Shown: positions 47,327-64,000 of the stretch, in pieces
How positions within the stretch are numbered: position 1 is the first letter of the stretch
Layout of the letters: each line of letters starts with the position of its first letter
Notes under the pieces: generated by a model
The model's database searches: none
Told to the model about the DNA's origin: nothing
What the model saw: the letters and a program-made list of their open reading frames with translations, nothing else
Program-made: the position numbers and the translations under genes
NCBI RefSeq assembly: GCF_000737315.1
Contig: NZ_JMCB01000021.1
Coordinates: 10,536-74,535, forward strand
DNA from: Hyalangium minutum
GTDB taxonomy: Bacteria > Myxococcota > Myxococcia > Myxococcales > Myxococcaceae
DNA length: 64,000 nucleotides
Direction of reading: 5' to 3'

Positions 47327-47731
47327 TCAGAAGTTGGAGTACGCCGAGCCGTTGTAGATGGACAGGCTGTAGCAGGCGCCGTTGGCGTCCCAGTTGATGT
47401 AGAAACGCCCCTGGTTCGCGAGCGCCGAGCTCCACAAGGCCGACACCGCCGCGTCCGGAGTGCAGCTATAGGTGCTGGGGGCAGTCGCGCCGGACACTGT
47501 GTAGCGCGCGTAGAAGCCGCGGCCGCCGGAGTCGTTCTCCCAGAAGTACGTGTAGGCCGTGCTCTGGGCATGCGCGCGCCAGCCGCGGAGGTTGCCGTAG
47601 CAGTAGCCCGAGCCGTCCGTGTACTGGTAGCAGTACCCGCTGTTGTAGCTGTAGCCAGCGCTCGCCACCGAAGCAACACCGAGAGCAGCCAGGGACACCA
47701 CGGGGGCCAGCTTCTTCATGAACCGGTTCAT
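47327..47731 (-). CDS. Secreted 134-aa Tyr/Gly/Ser-rich protein with 4 Cys (paralog A1)
   Basis: Signal peptide ending ASA; CAGGAG SD; gapless paralog of 48484-48888. Confidence 0.85.
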   Translation of the reverse strand: MNRFMKKLAPVVSLAALGVASVASAGYSYNSGYCYQYTDGSGYCYGNLRGWRAHAQSTAYTYFWENDSGGRGFYARYTVSGATAPSTYSCTPDAAVSALWSSALANQGRFYINWDANGACYSLSIYNGSAYSNF

Positions 47732-47891
47732 TGCCATTCTCCTGCGGGTGAGCGGGCTTGCCGCCTCACCCCATTCATCGAGGGGTTGATGGAACTGCTG
47801 TGTCACCTGAACCACCAGGAGCGCGACGTCCGTCTCCCGGCGTGAAACCTTCGGGCGGGATTACCTCCGCCCGTCCGGCGCCTCCGAGTCA

Positions 47892-48483: not shown

Positions 48484-48888
48484 TCAGAAGTTGGAGTACT
48501 GGGAGCCGTTGTTCAGGTACAGATAGGTGCAGGTGCCGGTCGCGTCCCACTGGATGTTGAAGTAGCCCGAGAGTGTGAGCGCCTTGCTCCAGAGCGCCCC
48601 GGTGGCGGCGTCCGGCGTGCAGCTCCCCGTGGTGGTCACGCCCGTCGAGGTATTGGTGTACGCGCCGTAGAAGCTCTTGCTACCGCTGTCGTGCCGGTAG
48701 AAGTACGCCTGGGTGCTGCTGCCCGCGTGGTTCTGGAATCCAAGGAAAGAGCCGTAGCAGCCACCCGAACCATCCGTGTTCTTGTAGCAGTACGCCGACT
48801 CCGAGGTGTAACCGGCATATGCCAGCGAAGCCCCACCCAGAACGGCAACGGACAGCACCGGGACCATCTTCTTCGCGAAACGGGTCAT
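48484..48888 (-). CDS. Secreted 134-aa Tyr/Gly/Ser-rich protein with 4 Cys (paralog A2)
   Basis: Signal peptide ending AYA; about 72/134 identical to A1 by hand alignment. Confidence 0.85.
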   Translation of the reverse strand: MTRFAKKMVPVLSVAVLGGASLAYAGYTSESAYCYKNTDGSGGCYGSFLGFQNHAGSSTQAYFYRHDSGSKSFYGAYTNTSTGVTTTGSCTPDAATGALWSKALTLSGYFNIQWDATGTCTYLYLNNGSQYSNF

Positions 48889-49100: not shown

Positions 49101-50225
49101 TCAGCGAGGCACCACTTCGTTGCAGGTGAGACCCTCGTCCGGAGCGCAGTTCTGCCCGATGAGGCAGCCGCCCACCCCGCGAAGATCCACGCAGCGCACG
49201 GGCCGGCAGTCTCCATCCGTCACGCACGGCTTGCGGCTCAGCGTGCACGAGCCCTGGCTGCAGGTGCCCTGCGCGCAGTCCGTGTCCAGCAGGCACGAGC
49301 AGTAGCCCAGCACATCGCCCTCGGCCACGTCACAGCGGCCCGCGCATGCGCCCACCTGCTCTCCCAAGCCCTTCACACACCCTCCACCGTGAGGGCAGTC
49401 CCCGTCCTCGTGGCAGGGCAGTGATGGATCCGGCGAGCACTCGGCGTCGGTGCGGCAGCGCGAGCGGCTGTAAGCCACCACCACGTCCGCGCATTGATAG
49501 CCATTGGGACAAACCTGCCCCCCGGAGCAATCCACGCCGCAGAAGGAGCCCCCTCCAGGCGCTGTCTCCACGAGGCAATAGTTGGCGCCCCGCCCGCACA
49601 CCTGGATGCCACCGCCATAGTTGCAGCTGGCGCAGTAGGGACGGCGAAGCGGATCCGCGTCGCTGTAGCAACGCGCTCGGGACTCACCAGCCGGAGTGCC
49701 GCAGCGCTCGCCGAAGGCACAGTCGCGCTCGGACGCGCAGAAGGCTGCGTCACAGACACCTACCGCACAGGCGGCGCGCCCCGCTTCATCCACCGCATCA
49801 CAGACACAAGCGGCGTCTCCACAGCGGCACGCCGTGCCTGGACAGTCGCCCGCGCTCCTGCAGCCCTCCTCGCACGCCGCACGCGAGGCGTCACAGACTT
49901 CGCCGGCCTCGCAGTGCAGATCCGTAGTGCAGCGCCCTCGCGCGAGACAGGTGCCGGTCGAGGTGTCACAGAAGAAGGCTGGGTCCGTGCAGTCCGCGTT
50001 CTTCTCGCAGCCCGCGCGCGGCTGGCAGAAGCCCGCAGGGTTGCACAGCTCGCCTGGGGCACACGCCGCGTCCGTGCGGCAGAGACACGCTCTGGAATCC
50101 GCATCGCAGCGATAGGCCTCCGCTGGCGCCCCACAATCCGAGGGCTCTCGGCAGGCCGCGCCGCCCTGGGTATCAGAGCAGGCAGCGAGCAGCAGCAGCA
50201 GGGCGAGAGGGCCGAAGCGGTTCAC
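49101..50225 (-). CDS. Cys-rich repeat lipoprotein (L5)
   Basis: GTG overlapping the L4 stop; LLAAC lipobox; many C-x5-C-x4/5-C repeats. Confidence 0.8.
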   Translation of the reverse strand: MNRFGPLALLLLLAACSDTQGGAACREPSDCGAPAEAYRCDADSRACLCRTDAACAPGELCNPAGFCQPRAGCEKNADCTDPAFFCDTSTGTCLARGRCTTDLHCEAGEVCDASRAACEEGCRSAGDCPGTACRCGDAACVCDAVDEAGRAACAVGVCDAAFCASERDCAFGERCGTPAGESRARCYSDADPLRRPYCASCNYGGGIQVCGRGANYCLVETAPGGGSFCGVDCSGGQVCPNGYQCADVVVAYSRSRCRTDAECSPDPSLPCHEDGDCPHGGGCVKGLGEQVGACAGRCDVAEGDVLGYCSCLLDTDCAQGTCSQGSCTLSRKPCVTDGDCRPVRCVDLRGVGGCLIGQNCAPDEGLTCNEVVPR

Positions 50226-53200
50226 GGGCGGATCTGTTCCTGGCGGGCCAGCGCATACGCGGTCCACGAGATGGGGGACAGCGTGTCATAGGTCCAGCGG
50301 TCATATTGGAAGCGCGGCACGCGGCTGGTGGTCAGCTCCGCACGGAGCACGGCTCCCTGCGGGAGCGTGGCGCGCAGCACTTCCAAGGCCGGGGCAGGCA
50401 TCGTCACCTGGGCCATCCCGCCTGGCATGATCACCGTCCATCGTGGGCCTCCGGTGGTTCCCAGCTCCGCGAGGACGAGCTGCTGTACATCCGGCGTCGC
50501 GCTGCCCTCCGCACGCCATGCCAGCTGACCTTCGAAGCGACCGCCCTGAGCGGGTGTGGTGAAGGTGGGAAGTGGCAACACGGGTCCCAACGTCACCCCT
50601 TGGGACAGAGCACCTGACTGCCGGTGGTAGAGCAGGCTCTGCGGGTATGCGGTGGTGCCTCGAAGCAAGTCGAGGAAGAGAAAGCTCGACCCATCGAGCC
50701 GAGGGAAGAACGGGAACGTGAGCTGCGGCCCGGAGCCTGTCACAGCCGAGGAGAGCCGCGTCCCCGTGCCCCAATTGGACGGGTGCGGGACGAACCCTTC
50801 CGAGCCCAGCTCCAGCCATGCGTAGACCTCATGCAGCGCGGGAACTCCGCCCACGCGCACAGGGCCCTCGGCGGTGAGTGGCGCGGTGACATCCAGGTGC
50901 ATGTCGAGCACCACGTCCCTGCCTTCCGCCACCCGGGTGCTGGAGGCAGCAATGCCTCGGTGGATGCCCAGCAGATATGGCTCGAACTCCGTGTCCCTCA
51001 CCACTCCCAGCACCGCGTAGACGGCTCGCAGCCCTGGCTGGGCGTGGACTCGGAAGGCGCCGCCATCCACGCGCAGCTTCCACGTGTCCTGGGTCCGGTC
51101 TCCCACGCCTCCGAAGGGTGGGCCTCCTGCGGGGCTCGACTGGGCAACGAAGACGCGCGCTTCCAGTTCCTCGTCGGACCCGAGTGGCCGGGGAGGCTTG
51201 AACCCACGCACCCGTCCTGTGATGACCGCCGAGGGAGGAAGCGGCGGATCGCCGGGGTTGGCTTCGCTCCCGATGCGGCGGAGGAAGACCGTCAGGTTCT
51301 CCGCTCGAATGTCAGTGACGGTGACGGCGTCGTAGCCCTCCTTATAGGCCGTCACCATCTGCGCTCCAGCGAGCCGCGTGTCCGAGAACGTCAGCTGTCC
51401 CCGCGCGTCCGTGCTTCCTTGAAAGGGTGTCGCCGAATCCGTGCCGAGCATCACCTTCGCCCCAGACACCGGTGCACCATAGGAGCCAAACGAGGAGTTC
51501 AGCACCGTGACGTTGAGCGTCCCGGTGAATGGCGCACCCGACAGTCCACCAGGGCCACGCGGGTCGAAGAAGGTGAAGCCCTGGGGCAGTGCGGCCCGAG
51601 AGCTTCCTCGCATCACGGCGACTTCCACGGAACCCAGGCTCGCAGGCGGCGTGCGGCAGGTGAGTGTGTGGGCATCCACCCGCTGCACGTCTCGCGCGGG
51701 CTCGCCTCCAAAGGTGACCGTGGTGCCCTCCTCCAGGCCGTCGCCTCGGAGTGTGACGAGGGTGCCCCCCGCGATGGCTCCTTGCGCAGGCTCGACCTGG
51801 CCGAGCAGGAGCGGAGCCTCGTAACGGAAGACCTCGGGCAGCACGGCCTCGTTCTCTGGGTCACTCGCGGCTTGGACATGGAGGTCATTTGCAGGACCAC
51901 TTGCCCCTGGAGGGGTAGTGAAGTGGAGCCGAGACTCACCCTCGACAGAGGTGGACAGAGCCGCCTGCGCGCTGACCGATACCCTGGCATCAGAGGGAAG
52001 TTGAGCCCCTTCGAGGAGCACGTCTGTCCCGCCTGCGAGCGGTCCGATCGAGGGGACCACAGAGGTCAAGGCGAGCTTGAAGGTGTACCCATCTTGGAGG
52101 CTCGCGCTCGCTGTGCCCTGGGCTGCGGTCACCGTCACGATGCGCGGCAGAGTTCCTCGTACGGGGACAGTGACCCCAACGGTGGTGAAGTTCACGGCAC
52201 CGGGGACCCCGGCTACGGGCTGGCCACCGAAGCTCACAGACAGTCCTGGTGCATCCAGCCCCTGCCCCGTCAACGTCACCGTGCCATCCGGCCGCGCGCC
52301 TACGTGCGGAAAGACTCCATAGAGCGCGAAGGGCCCAGCGGCATCGACATAGGTGAAGCCACTGCGAGCTGACCAAGAATCTCTCGGTGTGACGATGCGC
52401 ACCTCTACTGCACCTAACGTCGTGCCAGGAGGCGTGGTGGCTGTGATGCGCGTCGGACTCTCCACGGTAAAGGCGGCGGCGGGAACACCTCCGAAGAGCA
52501 CGTCCGTGGCCCCGCCGAATCCCTGACCCGAGAGCACCACCGAGGTCCCTCCTGCGAGAGGTCCCGTCAGTGGAGCCACATCCGTGATGCGCAGATCCTC
52601 GCTGTAGCGATAGGCCCGGCGCAGGGCGCCTCCTTCACCTCCTCCGAAGATGCGGACCTCCACGCTGTCCGCTGCGCGGCCCCTCGGGACCACGGCGCGC
52701 AGCTCCGTGGAAGAGAGGCGCGTCACCGTGGGACTCGTAAAGACACCGAAGAGCACCCGTGTCTCATCCGTAAAGCCGGAGCCCATCAACGTGACGGTGT
52801 TGCCTCCCGCCAGTGGCCCGCTCTCGGGAGAGACCGTGCGCAAGGTGAGTGGCTCGAACCACGTGAAGCAGCCATCGCAGACCGCAAGCCCTCGGGGATT
52901 CTCCAAGGTGATGCCCGCGGACCCTGCTGGACCGGGAGGTGTGCGCAGCTCGAGCAAGGTGTCGTCGATGATCTGGAAGTCCCGCACCGGAACTCCACCG
53001 ACCTTGAGCACCGTGCGCTTCGCGGCTTCCGTGGTGCTGCTCGCCACTCCGAGCAGGTACCCACTGCCCCTTACCGTGATCCACGTCCCTCCGCCGCTCT
53101 CTCCGCGCGCAGGCAGAGCTCCGAGGATTCGAGGCGGAGGCGGCACTCCCGCATCCGTTCCTCCATCCGTGGGCCCCGCGTCCGGCCGACCTGCATCCGC

Positions 53201-53317
53201 AGGCCCAGGAGTCCCTGCGTCGTCGGAAACTCCGCCATCCACACTCGGCCGGCGCTCTCCACCGCAGGCGGCGAGCAGGCACAAGAGCACGACGCTCAGG
53301 CGTGCACGTCCGCTCAT
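50222..53317 (-). CDS. IPT/TIG repeat lipoprotein (L4), six IPT domains plus C-terminal beta domains
   Basis: ATG overlapping the L3 stop; LLAAC lipobox; PDAG linker; six P..G...GG..VTL.G.G repeats. Confidence 0.85.
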   Translation of the reverse strand: MSGRARLSVVLLCLLAACGGERRPSVDGGVSDDAGTPGPADAGRPDAGPTDGGTDAGVPPPPRILGALPARGESGGGTWITVRGSGYLLGVASSTTEAAKRTVLKVGGVPVRDFQIIDDTLLELRTPPGPAGSAGITLENPRGLAVCDGCFTWFEPLTLRTVSPESGPLAGGNTVTLMGSGFTDETRVLFGVFTSPTVTRLSSTELRAVVPRGRAADSVEVRIFGGGEGGALRRAYRYSEDLRITDVAPLTGPLAGGTSVVLSGQGFGGATDVLFGGVPAAAFTVESPTRITATTPPGTTLGAVEVRIVTPRDSWSARSGFTYVDAAGPFALYGVFPHVGARPDGTVTLTGQGLDAPGLSVSFGGQPVAGVPGAVNFTTVGVTVPVRGTLPRIVTVTAAQGTASASLQDGYTFKLALTSVVPSIGPLAGGTDVLLEGAQLPSDARVSVSAQAALSTSVEGESRLHFTTPPGASGPANDLHVQAASDPENEAVLPEVFRYEAPLLLGQVEPAQGAIAGGTLVTLRGDGLEEGTTVTFGGEPARDVQRVDAHTLTCRTPPASLGSVEVAVMRGSSRAALPQGFTFFDPRGPGGLSGAPFTGTLNVTVLNSSFGSYGAPVSGAKVMLGTDSATPFQGSTDARGQLTFSDTRLAGAQMVTAYKEGYDAVTVTDIRAENLTVFLRRIGSEANPGDPPLPPSAVITGRVRGFKPPRPLGSDEELEARVFVAQSSPAGGPPFGGVGDRTQDTWKLRVDGGAFRVHAQPGLRAVYAVLGVVRDTEFEPYLLGIHRGIAASSTRVAEGRDVVLDMHLDVTAPLTAEGPVRVGGVPALHEVYAWLELGSEGFVPHPSNWGTGTRLSSAVTGSGPQLTFPFFPRLDGSSFLFLDLLRGTTAYPQSLLYHRQSGALSQGVTLGPVLPLPTFTTPAQGGRFEGQLAWRAEGSATPDVQQLVLAELGTTGGPRWTVIMPGGMAQVTMPAPALEVLRATLPQGAVLRAELTTSRVPRFQYDRWTYDTLSPISWTAYALARQEQIRP

Positions 53318-54792
53318 GGGAACTCCACCTGGAAGGTGTAGCCGTTCGTCGCGCGGGCATCGTCTCCCGAGACTCGGGCGGTGAGGGTCTTGCCTCCCAC
53401 GGCCCCCGCCGGAAGTGCGACGACTGCACCCGATGGGTCCTCCGAGCAGCCCAGCTCCGTGGAGCCCTCGAACAGGCACAGACGCAACAGCCCACTTGCA
53501 GCCGAGTAGTTCGACAAAGTGGCCCTCACCCCGCGCCCCGCAGGCACCGACAGCGTGAAGTGGTCCATGTCCTGGGGACAGATGACACCCTCCACCACTG
53601 TCCCCGAAGCGTAAGGCTTCGCCGTCGAGGGAGTATCGTTGGGCTCTTGCCCGTCATCGTCACAGGGCGTGCCGCGCGAGAGGAAGAAGCCGACATCGTA
53701 GTGCTGCGCGGGAGCCAGCGTGGAAACCCGGACCACGTATGTGCCCGGAAGCGCCGCGACGAAAGAGGCAAGCATGCGCCCCGAGGACAGCACCCGTCCC
53801 CCTGCGTCCAAGATGACCGTGGAGAAGGAGGACTCCGCGAGGGGATCTCCCTCGACGTTCACTCCCAGCTGATCTCCTCTCTCCAGTGCCATCGCGAAGT
53901 GGTCCACATCCCCCGCGCACAGGGTCAGCTCGAGGTACTGGCTCGCGCTCACCGGGAAGGCCACCGAAGGTGAGTCATTCGGCTCCAGCGCATCCGCCTG
54001 GCAGGCCCGGGGCACACAGGTCCCCGTGCCGATGTCACAGCGCTGGCTCGCGGAACAAGTCTCATCGGAGGTGCAGGGCGGAGGACGCTCCAGGCAAGCT
54101 CCCGTCGGCACATGACAGGACAGCGGGACCCGGCAGTCCCGATCCGAGTAGCAACGAGGCGTCACCGCGCAGCGGCCCGCGGCATCACACAGGAACCCGG
54201 GCCCACACTCCGCGCTCTCGACGCACTGGACACAGCGGCTCCCGGCACAGCGTTCGCCCGGGGCGCAGACGAGCGAGCCGTTCGCTTCTGTGCAGCGAGG
54301 GACACAGGCATGCAGCCCCGTGTTGCAGATCTCGCTGGCGCCGCAGTCCGCGTCCTCGAGACAGCCGAGGTCCTCTTCGCACACGAGATTCCCAAGGTTG
54401 CACCGCTGTCCCGTGGGGCACTCGTCTTTCGTCCCCGAGGGACAAAGGCTGACGGCGATCCGTGGCAGGCACTGGCCCTGATGACACCAGGCGCCCAGAG
54501 CGCACTCCTCGTTGCGCGCGCAGTCCCCGCCCCAGCCCTCGCGCCAGGAGCAGACGCGAGCCTCCGCGTCACATCGCTCCGTCAGCCGACACTGGCCGTT
54601 CGACTCGCACGAGCCGCAGACCCCTTCTTGCGCGCAGACTTGCCCTCCCGGGCAGTCCTCTCGCCGCTCGCAGGCCTGAGGATGAACTCCGGCATCGGGC
54701 CGTGGCGAGGGCTTTGACTCCGAGCAGGCTCCCCAGGCGAGCACGATCAGTCCGAGAGAGAGCGCTCGCACGGCAACAGAGGCCAGGGTCAC
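53314..54792 (-). CDS. Cys-rich repeat plus 2x PPC-like domain lipoprotein (L3)
   Basis: GTG overlapping the L2 stop; AWGAC lipobox-like; Cys repeats; EPND motifs preceding CxxDxDxF beta domains. Confidence 0.8.
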   Translation of the reverse strand: MTLASVAVRALSLGLIVLAWGACSESKPSPRPDAGVHPQACERREDCPGGQVCAQEGVCGSCESNGQCRLTERCDAEARVCSWREGWGGDCARNEECALGAWCHQGQCLPRIAVSLCPSGTKDECPTGQRCNLGNLVCEEDLGCLEDADCGASEICNTGLHACVPRCTEANGSLVCAPGERCAGSRCVQCVESAECGPGFLCDAAGRCAVTPRCYSDRDCRVPLSCHVPTGACLERPPPCTSDETCSASQRCDIGTGTCVPRACQADALEPNDSPSVAFPVSASQYLELTLCAGDVDHFAMALERGDQLGVNVEGDPLAESSFSTVILDAGGRVLSSGRMLASFVAALPGTYVVRVSTLAPAQHYDVGFFLSRGTPCDDDGQEPNDTPSTAKPYASGTVVEGVICPQDMDHFTLSVPAGRGVRATLSNYSAASGLLRLCLFEGSTELGCSEDPSGAVVALPAGAVGGKTLTARVSGDDARATNGYTFQVEFP

Positions 54793-56219
54793 GGCACCTC
54801 CGTGATGACGCCTGCGGGCCAGCTCACGTCTGCCACGCTCCACGCATCCCCTTGATGCGAGAGCATTCGCCGGAACTCCCCCTTCAACACTCCGCGCTCG
54901 TACACGCGCACGGTCGCCGTGCTTCGAGGATCCACAGCCCCGTTCTCCCGGGCGAAGACCACCGCCAGCCGGTAGCTCCCAGGGGCCGGCTCTCCGTAGC
55001 CGAACACCTCCGGCCCATATCCCGTGAGCGCATCCCGCAGCAGCTCCGGATCATCCTGAGCCACTCCCAGCGTGCCCCAGTCGGGACGAGGGTTCGCATA
55101 GTGGCAGTCGTCCGGGATGCTCCCGAGCGCCGCTCCCGCGTCCCTCAGCACGTGGAGATCCAGATCCGTCACCGCGTTGTCCCAGAACATCTCCACCAGG
55201 AGCTGTTGAGCGGGCGCCGCCACCACCTTCGCCCGGGCGGGTGCCACACTCCGAGCCCCTGCCGCATCCGTTACATGCAGCTCCACCTCATATTCACCCG
55301 GTACCGCCGCATCCAACCGCAGCACCGTGCGCGCGGCCGCCGGCTCCGCGATGAACGCCTGTGCCCCCACGGGCCGCGAGCGCAACACCCATTGGTACGT
55401 CAGCGGCGTGTCCCCATCCGGATCCATCGAGCCCGTCCCATCGAGCACCACCTGCTGTCCCGGCTCGCTCGTGTCCAGCGGCACCACCACGGGCACGGGC
55501 GCCCGGTTCACCGAGCCTCGCAGCTCCACCGTGGCCTCACGCCGCCCCGGTGCCGTGGTTCGCAGCAGCACCGCACCGCCCAAGGCTCCCGAAGCTCCCA
55601 CAGGCGCCGCGCAGCGCACGGTGAGTTGCACGTCGCTTCCCTGCTCTATCACCGCAGGTGTCCGCACCGAGCCCACGAGACTGAAGGCTTCACTCGTGCC
55701 CAGGGCAAGGCGGAGATCCTCCAGCACCAGATCCGCCGTGCCTCTTGCGCCGAGCGAGAACGCGCGGGCCACAGCCTGTCCCTCGGGGACGCGGCCAAAG
55801 TCGAGCACGGCTGGCTCCAGCTCCAATGCCGCCGCTGTCCGCCCCTCCCCTGTGAGCGCAACCTCCACCACCCCGCGCTCCATGTCGTCCGTTTCCACCA
55901 CCAACGTGGCCCGGTACACCGCCTCTGTGGGTGGCACGAACGCCACCCGGACCCCCTCCTCGCTCCCCGCACTCACGCTCTCCGGCACCGAGAGCACTCG
56001 GAACGGCGCGTCCGCCTCCTGAATGCGGACGCCGTACACTCGCAGCCCCGCGCGTCCCGCGTTGACGAGGGGCACCTCTCCCGTTGCCTCTCGGAGCACG
56101 GGCACCGTGCCCAGCTCCAGTGTTGCCGGAGGAGCCACCAGCCGGGGCCGCACCTGCTGCGCCACATCGCCGCCACATGCGGCACACAGCAGCGCAAGTC
56201 CAAGCGCCCCCCCCCTCAC
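54789..56219 (-). CDS. Lipoprotein with 2x choice-of-anchor D Ig domains, PKD-like and YfaP-like domains (L2)
   Basis: GTG overlapping the L1 stop; LCAAC lipobox; LELGTVP/LDFGRVP, LDGTGSMDPDG, WDNAVTDLDLHV, GYGPE. Confidence 0.8.
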   Translation of the reverse strand: MRGGALGLALLCAACGGDVAQQVRPRLVAPPATLELGTVPVLREATGEVPLVNAGRAGLRVYGVRIQEADAPFRVLSVPESVSAGSEEGVRVAFVPPTEAVYRATLVVETDDMERGVVEVALTGEGRTAAALELEPAVLDFGRVPEGQAVARAFSLGARGTADLVLEDLRLALGTSEAFSLVGSVRTPAVIEQGSDVQLTVRCAAPVGASGALGGAVLLRTTAPGRREATVELRGSVNRAPVPVVVPLDTSEPGQQVVLDGTGSMDPDGDTPLTYQWVLRSRPVGAQAFIAEPAAARTVLRLDAAVPGEYEVELHVTDAAGARSVAPARAKVVAAPAQQLLVEMFWDNAVTDLDLHVLRDAGAALGSIPDDCHYANPRPDWGTLGVAQDDPELLRDALTGYGPEVFGYGEPAPGSYRLAVVFARENGAVDPRSTATVRVYERGVLKGEFRRMLSHQGDAWSVADVSWPAGVITEVP

Positions 56220-57322
56220 CGCGTGCCCTCCTCGAAGTACCTCACCTCCACGCGTGCGCCGAGGCCGGGCACGGAGCGGCCCGCGAAGAAGACTGCTCCC
56301 CGCTCCGCCTCGTAGCGCCACCCGTCCTGGCCCTCGCGCCGAGGTGTGCATACCGTCCCCAAGGCCTCTGCAGGCTGGCCCTCACAGGCTGTGCGATCCA
56401 CGGCCTCGCAGTCCGCCACCGCTTCCGCCGAGACTCCGCACGGGTAGCGAACGTGGACCTCGATCGTCTCCGGATCCGGGGTGTGCGACAGCACGAACGT
56501 CCGTCGCAGCCCCACCGCACTCGTCGCCAGCGCTCGCAGCGTGTCCGCAAACTCGGCGTCGCAGATGCTCCCCACTTCTCCGCCTGTCAGTCTCGCCAGC
56601 TCCTGATAGCGGCTGCCCGGCGTCGCTCCGCAGGCATTCGTGGGCACATCCCCCATGATGGCGGAGGCCACCACCGTGCCGTCATTGCCGACGCCCTGAG
56701 CTTGCTCGAACGCCCGCCAGTACGCGCGCAGCTCATAGGGCGAGCGGTCCTCCTCATCCGTGACGAAGACGAGGTACAGGAACGCTCCCGGGCGCAGGAA
56801 CGGCACGGGGTAGCGCACGGCACAGTCCTCGTGGCAGGCCTCGGTGTCACACCCGGCCTCGCATGTGGCGAGCGCCGCCTTCCACGGTGCTCCCTCCTCC
56901 GCCTGCCGCTCCAGCACCAGCCGCGCGGCCTCCAGTCCCGCCTCGTACGCGCTGCCCGAAGTGCCCACCCGCACATTCCGGGCGAAGGCGCTCTCCAGAT
57001 CCGGCGTGTCCGGCGCCAGCAGCGCGGGCGTGCCCACCAGCTCACCGGGCCGCGCGAAGATGTCCGTCGTCGTGACGGCGAGCCGGAAGTCGATGCTCCC
57101 CTGCCGGAACAGGCGAATGAACGCCTGGAAGTTGCGCGCGAGGTTCTCCTGCCTCGGCGCCATCGAGCCCGAGTTGTCCACCACCCACAGCACGTCCACC
57201 TTCGAGGCGGACCGCTGCGCATAGGTGTCCACGCGCAACCCCGGTGGGAGCGCGGACACCAGACGGTCATCCCGGCATCCGGTGACAAGAAGCGCCAGGA
57301 GGGCGACAGCGGCTCGACGCAT
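56216..57322 (-). CDS. von Willebrand factor A lipoprotein with Cys-rich inserts (L1)
   Basis: LVTGC lipobox; MIDAS DNSGS, VTTTD, FVTDEED. Confidence 0.88.
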   Translation of the reverse strand: MRRAAVALLALLVTGCRDDRLVSALPPGLRVDTYAQRSASKVDVLWVVDNSGSMAPRQENLARNFQAFIRLFRQGSIDFRLAVTTTDIFARPGELVGTPALLAPDTPDLESAFARNVRVGTSGSAYEAGLEAARLVLERQAEEGAPWKAALATCEAGCDTEACHEDCAVRYPVPFLRPGAFLYLVFVTDEEDRSPYELRAYWRAFEQAQGVGNDGTVVASAIMGDVPTNACGATPGSRYQELARLTGGEVGSICDAEFADTLRALATSAVGLRRTFVLSHTPDPETIEVHVRYPCGVSAEAVADCEAVDRTACEGQPAEALGTVCTPRREGQDGWRYEAERGAVFFAGRSVPGLGARVEVRYFEEGTR

Positions 57323-57403: not shown

Positions 57404-58084
57404 TCACCCCAACTCCTCCTTCCGCTCCAGGCGCTTGGCTTGGAGCCAGGCCGCGAGGCGCTCAGCCTCGGGGACATCCTTGAGCGTCAGCAGCTTCAAG
57501 GAACGCTCTTCCTCCTTCTGCTCGCTCCTCACGTGCACCGTGCTCACGCCGCGCCGACGCTGGGAGGCTGTGATCTCGACCTCCACCTGGGAGATCTCCG
57601 AGTACCGCACGAAGCTCGGCTCTCCTTCTCCGCTCGCCTCGAACCCGTCTTCCTTCAGGTCCCACCCATCCCTCGAGCGGGAGATATCCGCGAAGCGCGC
57701 CACGCCCCACGCCACGAACACCCCGAGGAAGATCAGCGCCCACACGCCAAGCTGCTCCCTTCCGAACAGCGCCAGAACTCCCAACGGCGTCAGGAACGGC
57801 AGGGCCTCCCGCAACCGGCGCCGCATCGACACATGCGGCAGGATCCGCAGAGGCGGGGCCAACACCTCGGGGAGCCGAGGCAATCTCTGCGGCCGTCCCT
57901 CCCTCAGCCTCTCCAGCTCACCGCGCAGCCGGTCCCGCTCGGCCGTCAGCCGCTGAATCTTCTCCCGAAGCCCGGCGTTCTCCCCCGGCAGCGGCCCCAG
58001 CGCGCGCCGCTCGGCATTCAGCGTGTCCTCGATCTGCTCGATGGCCTGGGAGACCTCGGGGTCGATAAAGCGCTCACCCGACAT
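57404..58084 (-). CDS. Coiled coil plus 2 TM plus PH-like domain protein
   Basis: Heptad N-terminus, two hydrophobic helices, VRYSEISQVEV...GVSTVHV; 11-nt overlap with the upstream paralog. Confidence 0.7.
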   Translation of the reverse strand: MSGERFIDPEVSQAIEQIEDTLNAERRALGPLPGENAGLREKIQRLTAERDRLRGELERLREGRPQRLPRLPEVLAPPLRILPHVSMRRRLREALPFLTPLGVLALFGREQLGVWALIFLGVFVAWGVARFADISRSRDGWDLKEDGFEASGEGEPSFVRYSEISQVEVEITASQRRRGVSTVHVRSEQKEEERSLKLLTLKDVPEAERLAAWLQAKRLERKEELG

Positions 58085-58817
58085 GCGCAGCCTCCTTCGG
58101 AAGGCGGGCCCGCTCCCGGAGCCACTCGGCGAGCCGCCGCGGATCATCGAGCATGTCGATGTCCACGGTACGGTTCGGATAGTTCACGGCCTTCCCAATG
58201 GACGTCGGCACGCCAGGCTTCCAGATGATGCGCACAGAGCCGAACCCAAACAGTCTCTGCAGCCACCCCTGGCGGACCTCCACACTCTGGATCTCCGAGT
58301 AGAGGATCTTGCCCTTCAGCGCCTCCGTCCCCTCCAGCGAGAGCCCCTCCTCGTCAAAGCCCCAGGCGGACTGCACGTCGTCATCATCTTCCGGCCCCTG
58401 GAGGACGTAGAGGAGCGCCAGGCACAGCAGCAGCAAGCCGCCGTACGTGGCGAGGCGATGCAGCGAGCCGATCACCGAGCTGCCGAAGTAGAGGAAGATC
58501 GCCACGCTCGAGGGCAGCATCTTCAGGGCGTAGCGCAGCCGCCCGTAGGCGGTCCGCCGCGAGGGCGTGGCGCGGAAGGGCAACACCAGCTGATCCGGCA
58601 GGGAAGAGGCAGGGCGCTCGGCCTCGGCCTGGGCCACCTCGGCCATCCGGCTCAGCCAGCGGACCTCCTGCTCCAGCCGATCCACCTGCTCGGCCAGCTC
58701 GGCGTTCTCCCGGGGCAGGGTCTCCCGCTGGCAACGGGTCTCGCGCAGTTCCTCCTGGAGCCGCTCCAGCTCGTCGCGCTGCGAGCGGCCTGAGTCAACC
58801 TGGGTCCGGGTGCTCAC
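58074..58817 (-). CDS. Coiled coil plus 2 TM plus bacterial PH (bPH_2-like) domain protein
   Basis: ILYSEIQSVEVRQGWLQRLFGFGSVRI motif. Confidence 0.75.
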   Translation of the reverse strand: MSTRTQVDSGRSQRDELERLQEELRETRCQRETLPRENAELAEQVDRLEQEVRWLSRMAEVAQAEAERPASSLPDQLVLPFRATPSRRTAYGRLRYALKMLPSSVAIFLYFGSSVIGSLHRLATYGGLLLLCLALLYVLQGPEDDDDVQSAWGFDEEGLSLEGTEALKGKILYSEIQSVEVRQGWLQRLFGFGSVRIIWKPGVPTSIGKAVNYPNRTVDIDMLDDPRRLAEWLRERARLPKEAAHVG

Positions 58818-61141: not shown

Positions 61142-61295
61142 TCCGTGCCAAGGGGGTCTCTTTGGACTCCTCACGGGGAGAAACCTTCTTAGGCAACTGG
61201 AATTCTCTCCGGGCGATAACCCCCACAAGGGGAGGTGCTGCCACCTCCCGCCCCGGTGAGCCGAACCGGGAGCTCCTGTCTTCACGAGGTACGTC

Positions 61296-64000
61296 ATGTC
61301 TGTCAGCAACGTCGGTGGTGGTGGTTCTTCCAACCGGGCGAATGATCGCGATGAGCCCAAGGTCCAACCGAAGCCGAAGGATCCTCCGAAGGCCGAGGGT
61401 GCCCAGGCGCAGCAGACGGGCACCAAGACGGCGAAGAACCAGGTCAAGCCCAACCAGGTGAAGCCGAAGTCGGACGGCTTCGAGACCCAGACGAGCTCGT
61501 CCAGCCAGCGCAGCCAGCAGCAGGCGATGCTCGGCTCCACCACGGCGCCCGAGAAGACGGAAGCCACTGAGCATGCCCAGGCGGGCGCGCTGGAGAAGCT
61601 GGGCCTGACGGCCGAGGACGTGGTGATGGCCGGCAACAACGCCGCGCCGCACCTGGAGAAGGCCGCGCAGGCCGCGGTGAAGGGCAACTACGAGGAGGCG
61701 CTCGGGCACCTGAAGGACGCGGCCACCTCGTCGCCGAAGATCGCCGAGAAGGCCGTGCGCGGGCTGGCGCAGAACCTGCCGGACGGCGTCGCCAAGACGC
61801 TGCTCACGGACAAGGCGCTCGTGCAGGAGTTGGTGAACAACAGCGCGCTCCACTCCTCCGTGGGTAAGCTCATCAAGAACCCCACGGACCTGGGTGCCGT
61901 GCGTGAGCTGGTCGGCAATGACAAGCTCCGTGACGCCACGCTCACCGCGCTGGGCAAGGACCCGGGCGTCCAGGCGCAGCTGGAGAAGATTGGCCTCACG
62001 CCTGAGGACCTCGTCCAGGCGGGCAAGGCCGCTCCGAAGCTGATCGAGTCCTTCGAGAAGCTCCAGGCGGGCGATGTGAAGGGCGCCCTCACGGACTTCC
62101 AGAAGGCCGTGGAGGCCGCTCCGGATCTGGCCGCCAAGCTGGGCCAGAAGCTGCTCGACAAGGTGCCCCAGGGCATCAAGGACCAGTTCGCCAAGCTCGG
62201 CATCACCCCCGAGGCCCTGCAGAAGTCCGGCGACGCCCTCCCCCACCTCTATGACGCCGCCGATGCGGCCGCGAAGGGCGAGTGGCAGAAGTCCTTCGAC
62301 AGCCTCAAGCAGGCCGCGGGTGCCGCGCCCGAGGTGGTGCAGCAGGCCATCAAGGGTCTGGCCAAGCAGCTCCCCGACAGCCTTGGGGCCGTCAAGTCGC
62401 TGCTCACCGACGACGCGTTCGTGAAGGAGCTCGCCACCAACAAGGACCTGCATGATCAGGTCGGCAAGCTCTTCAATGACTCCACGCGCATGGAGGGCCT
62501 GCGCGGGCTGCTGGGCAACGACAAGGCCCGCGACGCCGCGCTCACCGCACTGGGCAATGATCCGGGCGTCAAGGCGCAGCTCGAGAAGATCGGCCTGACG
62601 CCGCAGGACCTCGTCCAGGCGGGCAAGGCTGCTCCGAAGCTCTGGGACGCCTTCGAGAAGCTCCAGGCGGGCGATGTGAAGGGCGCCCTCACGGACTTCC
62701 AGAAGGCCGTGGAGGCTTCTCCGGATCTGTCCGCCAAGCTGGGCCAGAAGCTGCTCGATAAGGTGCCCCAGGGCATCAAGGACCAGTTCGCCAAGCTCGG
62801 CATCACCCCCGAGGCCCTGCAGAAGGCCGGCGCGGCTCTGCCCAAGCTCTATGACGCGGCGGATGCGGCGTCCAAGGGTGACTGGAAGGGTGCCTACAGC
62901 GCCCTCAAGGATGCCGCCGCTGCTGCTCCGGATGTCGCGACCCAGGCTCTCAAGGGTCTGGCCAAGCAGCTCCCGGACAGCCTTGGCGCTGCCAAGTCCC
63001 TGCTCACCAACGATGCGTTCCTCAAGGAGCTCGTCTCCAACAAGGACCTGCAGGGCTCGCTCGAGAAGCTCGTCGGTGGCGACACCAGCGCCATCAAGGA
63101 CCTGCTGCGCAACGACAAGGCTCGCGACGCCGCGCTCACCGCCATCGGCAATGATCCGGGCATCAAGGCTCAGCTGGAGAAGATCGGCCTGACGCCGCAG
63201 GACCTGGTCGCCGCGGGCAAGGCCGCTCCGGCCATCATGGATGCCTTCGAGAAGCTCCAGTCGGGCGACGTGAAGGGCGCCCTGACTGACTTCCAGAAGG
63301 CCGTGGAGACCTCGCCCGAGCTGGCCGCCAAGCTGGGCCAGAAGCTGCTCGACAAGGTCCCCCAGGGCATCAAGGACCAGTTCGCCAAGCTGGGTATCAC
63401 TCCCGAGACGCTCCAGAAGTCGGGCGCCGCTCTGCCCAAGCTCTATGAGGCCGCGGACGCTGCTTCGAAGGGTGACTGGAAGGGTGCCTACAGCGCCATC
63501 AAGGACGCGGCGGCCGCCGCTCCGGAGCTGGCGACTCAGGCCCTCAAGGGTCTGGCCAACCAGCTGCCCGACAGCCTCGGCGCTGCCAAGTCCCTGCTCA
63601 CCAACGATGCGTTCCTCAAGGAGCTTGTCTCCAACAAGGACCTGCAGGGCTCGCTCGAGAAGCTCGTCGGTGGTGACACCAGCGCCATCAAGGACCTGCT
63701 GCGCAACGACAAGGCCCGTGACGCCGCTCTCACTGCCATCGGCAACGACCCGGGCATCAAGGCTCAGCTGGAGAAGGCCGGCCTCACCCCTGAGGACCTG
63801 GTCGCCGCTGGCAAGGCCGCTCCGGCCATCATGGATGCCTTCGAGAAGCTCCAGTCGGGCGACGTGAAGGGCGCCCTGACTGACTTCCAGAAGGCCGTGG
63901 AGACCTCGCCTGAGCTGGCCGCCAAGCTCGGCCAGAAGCTGCTCGACAAGGTCCCCCAGGGCATCAAGGACCAGTTCGCCAAGCTGGGTATTACTCCTGA
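61296..64000 (+). CDS. Large alpha-helical tandem-repeat protein, 3' partial (at least 901 aa; not in the ORF track)
   Basis: ATG at 61296 with GAGG SD; open GC3-rich frame to the window end; MSVSNVGGGGSS...SDGFE N-terminus followed by repeats. Confidence 0.9.
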   Translation, partial: MSVSNVGGGGSSNRANDRDEPKVQPKPKDPPKAEGAQAQQTGTKTAKNQVKPNQVKPKSDGFETQTSSSSQRSQQQAMLGSTTAPEKTEATEHAQAGALEKLGLTAEDVVMAGNNAAPHLEKAAQAAVKGNYEEALGHLKDAATSSPKIAEKAVRGLAQNLPDGVAKTLLTDKALVQELVNNSALHSSVGKLIKNPTDLGAVRELVGNDKLRDATLTALGKDPGVQAQLEKIGLTPEDLVQAGKAAPKLIESFEKLQAGDVKGALTDFQKAVEAAPDLAAKLGQKLLDKVPQGIKDQFAKLGITPEALQKSGDALPHLYDAADAAAKGEWQKSFDSLKQAAGAAPEVVQQAIKGLAKQLPDSLGAVKSLLTDDAFVKELATNKDLHDQVGKLFNDSTRMEGLRGLLGNDKARDAALTALGNDPGVKAQLEKIGLTPQDLVQAGKAAPKLWDAFEKLQAGDVKGALTDFQKAVEASPDLSAKLGQKLLDKVPQGIKDQFAKLGITPEALQKAGAALPKLYDAADAASKGDWKGAYSALKDAAAAAPDVATQALKGLAKQLPDSLGAAKSLLTNDAFLKELVSNKDLQGSLEKLVGGDTSAIKDLLRNDKARDAALTAIGNDPGIKAQLEKIGLTPQDLVAAGKAAPAIMDAFEKLQSGDVKGALTDFQKAVETSPELAAKLGQKLLDKVPQGIKDQFAKLGITPETLQKSGAALPKLYEAADAASKGDWKGAYSAIKDAAAAAPELATQALKGLANQLPDSLGAAKSLLTNDAFLKELVSNKDLQGSLEKLVGGDTSAIKDLLRNDKARDAALTAIGNDPGIKAQLEKAGLTPEDLVAAGKAAPAIMDAFEKLQSGDVKGALTDFQKAVETSPELAAKLGQKLLDKVPQGIKDQFAKLGITP
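61590..64000 (+). repeat. Intragenic tandem repeat, period 594-600 nt (198-200 aa)
   Basis: Anchor CTxGAGAAG (LEK) at 61980, 62580, 63174 and 63768; later copies nearly identical at the DNA level. Confidence 0.95.

Follow-up and report, generated by a model that had tools for sequence, protein, structure and literature searches.

A conserved five-gene operon of predicted lipoproteins around a vWA/MIDAS protein in myxobacteria, a candidate surface-adhesion module

Five overlapping genes conserved as a unit

The window analysed here, a 64-kb stretch of Hyalangium minutum DNA with a GC content of ~0.68, contains five consecutive open reading frames (ORFs) on the minus strand at 49101-57322, which we name g1 to g5. 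A preliminary description of this DNA had placed five genes at these positions, each overlapping the next by 4 nt, and had proposed that they encode a surface complex assembled from lipoproteins without any enzyme or transporter. The ORFs were found where described, the overlap is present at all four junctions (GTGA, GTGA, ATGA and GTGA) and conserved in orthologs, and profile scans detected no enzyme or transporter domain in g1-g5. Together the five products hold 118 cysteines. The genes, their junctions and two features within them are listed below; the loci and orthologs counted are those of the genome comparison that follows.

[quoted passage not shown]
54789-56219, minus strand: g2, predicted 476-aa lipoprotein with two HYDIN/choice-of-anchor-D Ig domains, a PKD domain and a DUF2135/YfaP-like domain
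53314-54792, minus strand: g3, predicted 492-aa lipoprotein with 43 Cys, Cys-rich repeats and two PPC-like domains
50222-53317, minus strand: g4, predicted 1031-aa lipoprotein with a tether, six IPT/TIG repeats (the sixth degenerate) and four beta-sandwiches
49101-50225, minus strand: g5, predicted 374-aa lipoprotein with 55 Cys and no Pfam family
56216-56219, minus strand: g1/g2 junction, GTGA, stop overlapping start; 4-nt or 1-nt overlap in 49 of 60 loci
54789-54792, minus strand: g2/g3 junction, GTGA after a Pro codon (CCGTGA); overlap in 50 of 57 loci
53314-53317, minus strand: g3/g4 junction, ATGA after a Pro codon (CCATGA); overlap in 46 of 55 loci
50222-50225, minus strand: g4/g5 junction, GTGA after a Pro codon (CCGTGA); overlap in 40 of 47 loci
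57164-57178, minus strand: codons of g1 for the MIDAS residues D49-N-S51-G-S53; D, S and S invariant in 15 orthologs
54792-55214, minus strand: C-terminal DUF2135 (YfaP)-like domain of g2 (aa 336-476), with the motifs W-D-x3-TDLDLHV and TGYGPEVF

The conservation of this arrangement was assessed by scanning one genome per species, which returned 335 g1 relatives. Of their loci, the best 80, from Myxococcaceae/Archangiaceae, were fetched with 10-kb flanks and compared by tblastn with the five proteins and nine neighbours. All five genes are complete, colinear and on one strand at 53 of the 80 loci, and at 25 a colinear prefix is followed by the end of the contig. The other two carry all five genes with an internal deletion in g3/g4. 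There was no locus among the 80 with g1 lacking its partners, and no reordering was seen either, even where the identity of the module drops to ~45-55% in Archangium-like metagenome-assembled genomes (MAGs). Gene order, which the preliminary description had singled out for checking, is therefore conserved, with 53 complete colinear loci and no solo copies. Between close relatives, identity is uniform along all five proteins and no hypervariable region was found.

The overlaps are retained along with the gene order, the overall figure for the g1-g5 junctions being ~84-88% of orthologous loci. Three of the four junctions in the window have the form CC(A/G)TGA, in which a proline codon immediately precedes TGA (50222-50227, 53314-53319 and 54789-54794); window g1 ends Arg-TGA instead. 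Among orthologs the Pro-TGA end is present in 51/75 copies of g1, 64/73 of g2, 57/65 of g3 and 55/56 of g4. The terminal gene does not carry this signature, as g5 orthologs end in R, Q, P or K and use mixed stop codons. It may be that slow termination in a Pro-UGA context favours reinitiation at the overlapping start codon. Taken together, the fixed order and the retained overlaps indicate that the five genes are a self-contained cassette in which the coupling of translation is under selection.

The GC content at third codon positions (GC3) is 0.74-0.79 in g2-g5, 0.85 in g1 and 0.84-0.95 in most neighbouring genes. The lower GC3 of g2-g5 suggests either weak codon bias together with low expression, or a foreign origin of the cassette. 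Scans for promoters, terminators and sigma-54 sites returned nothing above background, and Rfam and tRNA scans of the window were empty.

Several individual loci deserve comment. In Pyxidicoccus fallax DSM 14698, one of the two with an internal deletion (locus L006, 12317-15356), g3 and g4 form a single frame that lacks roughly one quarter of g3 and one half of g4; this is either an in-frame deletion/fusion or an assembly artefact. In the second such locus (L069) g4 is partial. The Archangiaceae MAG JAYVRT01 has two contigs (L018 and L047) that each carry g1-g2, reflecting either two paralogous modules or mixed binning. Myxococcus xanthus, Stigmatella and Corallococcus coralloides did not appear among the best 120 proteins or the best 80 loci, and other Myxococcus species do carry relatives (~66% identity). 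Model strains such as M. xanthus thus probably lack the module.

Predicted products of the cassette

Each of the five N-termini consists of a short basic and hydrophobic leader that runs up to a cysteine: MRRAAVALLALLVTG in g1, MRGGALGLALLCAA in g2, ...ALSLGLIVLAWGA in g3, MSGRARLSVVLLCLLAA in g4 and MNRFGPLALLLLLAA in g5. The leaders close with lipobox-type sequences (LVTGC, LCAAC, AWGAC, LLAAC and LLAAC, respectively). The N-termini quoted in the preliminary description are present in the window and are kept in most orthologs, in agreement with its reading of all five as lipoproteins. The residue at position -3 is atypical in window g2 (C) and g3 (W), and the ortholog boxes are canonical (LAGC, LAAC, LTAC). 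A combined lipobox and hydrophobicity test was passed by 61/75 orthologs of g1, 63/73 of g2, 57/65 of g3, 55/56 of g4 and 47/55 of g5; these counts come from a crude regular-expression test, and the ortholog start codons were chosen with the same expression. The lipobox cysteine of g1 (C16) is invariant in orthologs. None of the g1-g5 C-termini contains a hydrophobic segment; anchoring would be by the N-terminal lipid.

Lipoproteins of M. xanthus use Lys at position +2 as an inner-membrane signal and Ala at position +7 as a matrix signal (PMC3222651). Both residues are absent from all five window proteins, from which sorting to the outer membrane would be predicted. Orthologs of g1-g4 almost never have Lys at +2. 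For g5, 36 of 47 orthologs have R (31) or K (5) at +2, a basic residue, where the window protein has Ser (50178-50180).

The vWA domain of g1 spans aa 41-277 and, in an AlphaFold2 model (pLDDT 79), is inserted in a small beta domain formed by a strand at aa 29-35 and strands at aa 288-364. Its Pfam match is weak (17 bits). The preliminary description had called the MIDAS intact, which stands for the D49-x-S51-x-S53 motif and D189, both invariant in the 15 orthologs; the proposed threonine does not stand, as T121 varies, and the invariant candidates for its place are S124 and E127. Ten of the 11 cysteines lie outside the lipobox and are likewise invariant in the 15 orthologs. Foldseek matched the model best to the SpaC pilus tip adhesin and to integrin beta headpieces (E ~1e-8, template modelling (TM) score 0.36-0.40); for the integrin beta headpiece the E-value is ~4e-8, with the low TM-score of 0.36-0.40 and a root-mean-square deviation above 10 A. 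A sequence search of solved structures gave no match to g1. Among curated families the best is the Bdellovibrio MIDAS family adhesin NF052240 (E 4e-13, aa 38-195 aligned), at 49.1 bits and thus below the 700-bit equivalog cutoff. The closest protein matches of g1 are from Hyalangium (85-91% identity).

In g2, two HYDIN/ASH-type Ig domains at ~aa 26-235 (choice-of-anchor D, 71 bits against a cutoff of 45) are followed by a PKD domain at ~aa 238-335 (35 bits against a cutoff of 27). Both exceed their cutoffs, bearing out the Ig folds of the preliminary description, which had missed the DUF2135-like domain that follows. The C-terminal 140 aa (aligned over aa 340-423) match Escherichia coli YfaP in hhalign with a probability of 96.6% and an E-value of 5.7e-10. 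An exhaustive search at E<=1e-3 placed 2386 representatives in the family of this domain, and 7 of 99 scanned relatives match PF09906 directly. In a Rosetta-stone test, no fusion of a DUF2135-like domain to a vWA domain was found, the partners in the 99 scanned proteins being PKD, HYDIN-Ig and DUF1573; a word-based fusion search with the g2 domain recovered ortholog fragments only. Against solved structures, g2 gave only generic PKD/HYDIN matches.

The g3 product has about 38 of its 43 cysteines in a repeat region at aa 41-264, mostly with C-x5-C spacing. This region resembles DUF7107 and Dickkopf_N, and a DUF7107 match is found in 13 of 14 orthologs. The g3 protein also gave a weak match to the Cys-rich stalk of TraA (17 bits where the cutoff is 750, E 0.0015) and one to the Myxo_Cys_RPT repeat. 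Beyond the repeat region, aa 265-492 form two PPC-like domains, each starting with E-P-N-D. This assignment, made in the preliminary description, holds in part: window g3 has no Pfam PPC match, and 7 of 14 orthologs do (best E 6e-6). No solved structure matched the C-terminal half. At aa 138-144 (window 54361-54381) lies the sequence V-C-E-E-D-L-G-C, an acidic loop bounded by a disulfide and invariant in 14/14 orthologs.

The second Cys-rich product, g5, has 55 cysteines, and 52 of them do not vary among 13 orthologs. It matched no family in Pfam or the PDB. The repeats at its N-terminus share 41% identity over 87 aa with the Cys-rich region of g3, to which they are related.

The largest product, g4, begins with a conserved, D-A-G-rich tether of ~45 aa, followed at aa 66-584 by IPT/TIG repeats. 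Six had been counted in the preliminary description; Pfam recovers five (E 5e-54), and the sixth is degenerate and seen only in the spacing of the repeat motifs (aa 69, 164, 249, 337, 422 and 510). In solved structures the repeats find generic IPT matches of the plexin/Met-like kind. The remaining 447 aa (aa 585-1031) were modelled as a CarboxypepD_reg-like domain and three further beta-sandwiches (pLDDT 87.5), four C-terminal sandwiches in all that had been overlooked earlier. Foldseek likens this part to Gram-positive pilins, to macroglobulin (MG) domains of complement (C3/C5) and to Salmonella alpha-2-macroglobulin, at a TM-score of ~0.14, and Pfam gives a weak bMG3 match (E 0.031). Distant relatives of the g4 C-terminal part (27-29% identity) were seen in TIG proteins of ~680 aa at two further loci (L081, 10001-14048; L082, 1410-4749), where the next gene encodes an IgGFc_binding-domain protein in a two-gene context with no vWA partner. 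Because these relatives occur in another context without a vWA protein, they give no ground for placing the module in further lineages.

Genomic surroundings of the cassette

No flanking gene or regulator is conserved with the cassette: no family occurs at more than 15 of the 40 fully flanked loci. Only close genera retain the neighbours present in the window, which encode bPH_2 membrane proteins, an MBL hydrolase, a lipoprotein with Ig-like character, small secreted proteins and an SDR, and across lineages the cassette sits in differing genomic contexts. In the Archangium-like group the commonest upstream neighbour is atpG; k-mers shared upstream of the cassette proved to be the start of this divergent gene.

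Two tandem paralogs (57404-58090 and 58074-58799, minus strand) lie next to g1 on its upstream side, in the same orientation and 81 nt from its start. Each has a coiled coil at the N-terminus, a pair of hydrophobic segments and a bacterial PH (bPH_2) domain, and both are kept only in relatives at the level of Hyalangium. Just downstream of the module are two paralogous genes for small secreted proteins (48484-48888 and 47327-47740, minus strand) of ~134-137 aa that are 54% identical and rich in Tyr, Gly and Ser. They share the motif G-Y-x3-S-x-Y-C-Y-x2-TDGSG-x-CYG, have no Pfam match and are not kept beside the module in distant genomes. Further away, an ORF on the plus strand (61260-63998) runs past the window end and is built from tandem repeats of ~180 aa, at least 4.5 in number and nearly identical. 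They are helical, have a high content of Lys, Ala and Leu and show the recurring pattern ...KIGLTPEDLVQAGKAAPKL...KGALTDFQKAVE..., and their Pfam matches are weak and spurious.

A candidate adhesion complex, its relatives and its alternatives

We think it probable that the five proteins act jointly as one extracytoplasmic, non-enzymatic assembly. To the more specific proposal, that they form a surface-adhesion complex of co-translated, disulfide-stiffened outer-membrane lipoproteins with the vWA domain of g1 as its ligand-binding head, we give an even chance; here outer-membrane sorting, physical assembly, surface exposure and adhesive function are what we infer.

In such a model, g1-g5 would be expressed as one autonomous operon, and termination-reinitiation at the overlapping stop and start codons would fix the ratio of the products. 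Each product would be exported, lipid-modified at its lipobox cysteine and, having no Lys at +2, delivered to the outer membrane, where the five would join in a non-enzymatic, heavily disulfide-bonded envelope complex. The g1 subunit would provide a MIDAS head like that of Bd0875 or CglB, in which a divalent cation bridges to an acidic residue of the ligand. The g4 protein, with ~10 beta-sandwich domains and its ~45-aa tether, could build a rigid stalk or scaffold together with the Cys-rich rods of g3 and g5, and the PKD and DUF2135-like domains of g2, like the twin PPC-like domains of g3, may serve as accessory binding or scaffolding modules. The likeliest role would then be to make the cell surface adhere to some conserved ligand, for example substratum, matrix, prey or a neighbouring cell.

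The assignment of g1 as the MIDAS ligand-binding subunit is proposed by analogy with two vWA lipoproteins for which functional data exist. Bd0875 of Bdellovibrio bacteriovorus is a 378-aa lipoprotein adhesin with a split beta domain and 4 disulfides (PMC11003981). CglB, the gliding adhesin of M. xanthus, is a Cys-rich vWA outer-membrane lipoprotein with a MIDAS and 17 Cys in 416 aa (PMC9946355). MIDAS mutants of both Bd0875 (PMC11003981) and CglB (PMC9946355) lose function. Like Bd0875 and Bd1483, g1 combines a lipobox with a D-x-S-x-S MIDAS in a vWA fold, and the vWA domain is inserted in a beta domain. This shared build fits an adhesive head. However, at 49 against 700 bits g1 is a distant relative rather than an ortholog; PMC11003981 does not describe Bd0875 in a five-lipoprotein operon, and Bdellovibrio is an invasive predator, whereas the host here is a myxobacterium.

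The resemblance to CglB lies in a myxobacterial Cys-rich lipoprotein with vWA and MIDAS (11 Cys in 368 aa for g1). CglB differs in having an N-terminal beta-jellyroll instead of a split beta domain, and in its partners, the Glt outer-membrane platform (GltABCHK) and the Agl motor; the genes beside the module in the window neighbourhood include none of the glt or agl kind. An NCBIfam scan at E<=10 gave no sign that g1 is a CglB ortholog and returned only the CglD vWA motif (29 bits against 400), with no CglB model among those compared. The vWA 'force transducers' (PMC12204202) differ from the module in being helix-anchored inner-membrane proteins beside TolQ-like motors. A full-text literature search found no paper on the five-gene module, in keeping with the preliminary description, which knew of no characterised match. 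Hence g1 is of the vWA-lipoprotein adhesin kind, and what is new is the undescribed, fixed five-lipoprotein operon around it.

Several points weigh against a surface-adhesion complex. Contacts among g1-g5 are inferred, and surface exposure of myxobacterial lipoproteins is not predictable. The majority of lipoproteins in the outer membrane are oriented towards the periplasm (stated also in PMC9946355), and the basic +2 residue of g5 orthologs may place this protein in a different membrane in many species. At 49 against 700 bits, the function of Bd0875 is not transferable to g1, and the structural matches from Foldseek have low TM-scores, at 0.36-0.40 for g1 and ~0.14 for the part of g4 with several domains. 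Finally, the GC3 of g2-g5, lower than that of their neighbours, is compatible with low expression.

The best-surviving alternative, which we regard as fairly unlikely, is a scaffold on the inner leaflet of the outer membrane that faces the periplasm, with g5 possibly in the inner membrane. Such a scaffold could lend the envelope stiffness, bridge it or act as a docking point for another machine, its vWA MIDAS binding an internal partner. The usual orientation of outer-membrane lipoproteins speaks for it, as do the basic +2 residue in 36/47 g5 orthologs, set beside the use of +2 Lys as an inner-membrane signal in M. xanthus (PMC3222651), and the uniform conservation without a hypervariable surface patch. 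Moreover, the DUF2135 domain of g2 is common to YfaP, encoded in the yfaS alpha-2-macroglobulin envelope operon of E. coli. However, IPT/TIG, PKD, PPC and HYDIN-Ig domains and Cys-rich rods are typically extracellular, the nearest vWA relatives with data (Bd0875 and CglB) are surface adhesins, g5 of the window has Ser at +2, and an extended g4 of ~10 domains would far exceed the width of the periplasm.

It is also conceivable, if quite unlikely in our view, that the five are co-regulated but independent lipoproteins of the matrix or outer membrane that form no defined complex. Each has its own signal peptide and lipid anchor, and the interfaces between subunits are postulated. Relatives of individual parts do exist in other settings: the distant relatives of the g4 C-terminal part lack vWA partners and sit beside an IgGFc_binding-domain protein, and g2-like Ig-PKD-DUF2135 proteins are a large family by themselves. 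Set against this, the 80 loci reach down to ~45% identity with no reordering or solo case and only two g3/g4 deletions, and the overlaps and Pro-TGA signature are strongly kept, a pattern expected where subunit ratios matter.

We consider very unlikely a polymorphic cell-cell recognition receptor of the TraA/TraB kind, acting in kin recognition or outer-membrane exchange, an option that the preliminary description had raised. TraA is a myxobacterial surface protein with a Cys-rich stalk, to which g3 bears the weak likeness given above (17 bits against 750, alongside Myxo_Cys_RPT), and all five products are lipoproteins, the cargo class of outer-membrane exchange (PMC4488436). Unlike TraA, the module has no PA14 head, MYXO-CTERM tag, TraB partner or polymorphic region. 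Close relatives differ evenly along the length of all five proteins, none of which shows a hypervariable head, and we reject kin recognition on this ground.

Least credible is a protease trap or defence operon of the alpha-2-macroglobulin kind, comparable to the likewise five-gene E. coli yfaA-T-S-Q-P: the C-terminal domain of g2 is homologous to that of YfaP, with shared TDLDLHV and TGYGPE motifs, and the g4 sandwiches are weakly MG-like in Pfam (bMG3) and Foldseek (C3/C5 and Salmonella alpha-2-macroglobulin), but no A2M, thioester or bait-region match was found in any of the five proteins, on which count we reject this reading; no YfaA, YfaQ or YfaT homologs were found, the alpha-2-macroglobulin, DUF2138, DUF1175 and DUF2300 proteins of the yfa operon have no counterpart in the module, and the MG likeness stands at a TM-score of ~0.14.

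Returning to the surface-adhesion complex, its architecture invites comparison with integrins, which combine a vWA domain in a beta-sandwich (their beta headpieces are among the best structural matches of g1), Cys-rich rods (as in g3 and g5) and Ig-like legs (as in g2 and g4); plexin and Met share the IPT repeats of g4. Unlike in integrins, the parts of the module are distributed over five lipid-anchored polypeptides, with no transmembrane helix or cytoplasmic tail. The resemblance is architectural and is not evidence of homology. A bolder proposal, which we think unlikely, is that the module is an integrin-like receptor built from five separately lipid-anchored subunits, with obligatory translational coupling fixing their stoichiometry and with a conserved extracellular ligand. 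In it, g1 would be a beta-I/hybrid-like head, g3 and g5 rigid rods, and g2 and g4 legs of Ig and IPT domains. More speculatively, the g1 MIDAS might find an internal ligand in the acidic g3 loop C138-E-E-D-L-G-C144, which could gate the head. If true, this reading would mean that Myxococcota have a new class of surface machine made of several lipoproteins.

Should the proteins instead prove to be independent matrix lipoproteins, the analysis would still correct the annotation of five genes recorded as 'hypothetical' or 'vWA domain'. The near-universal CC(A/G)UGA Pro-stop/start junctions offer a natural case for the study of termination-reinitiation coupling in high-GC bacteria. Lipoproteins with vWA/MIDAS have recently emerged as key adhesins in both of the best-studied groups of predatory bacteria, with CglB in myxobacterial gliding and Bd0875 in prey entry by Bdellovibrio. 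The module described here offers such a protein together with four fixed, co-translated partners, and thus a compact genetic system for learning how lipoprotein adhesins are scaffolded, exposed and regulated.

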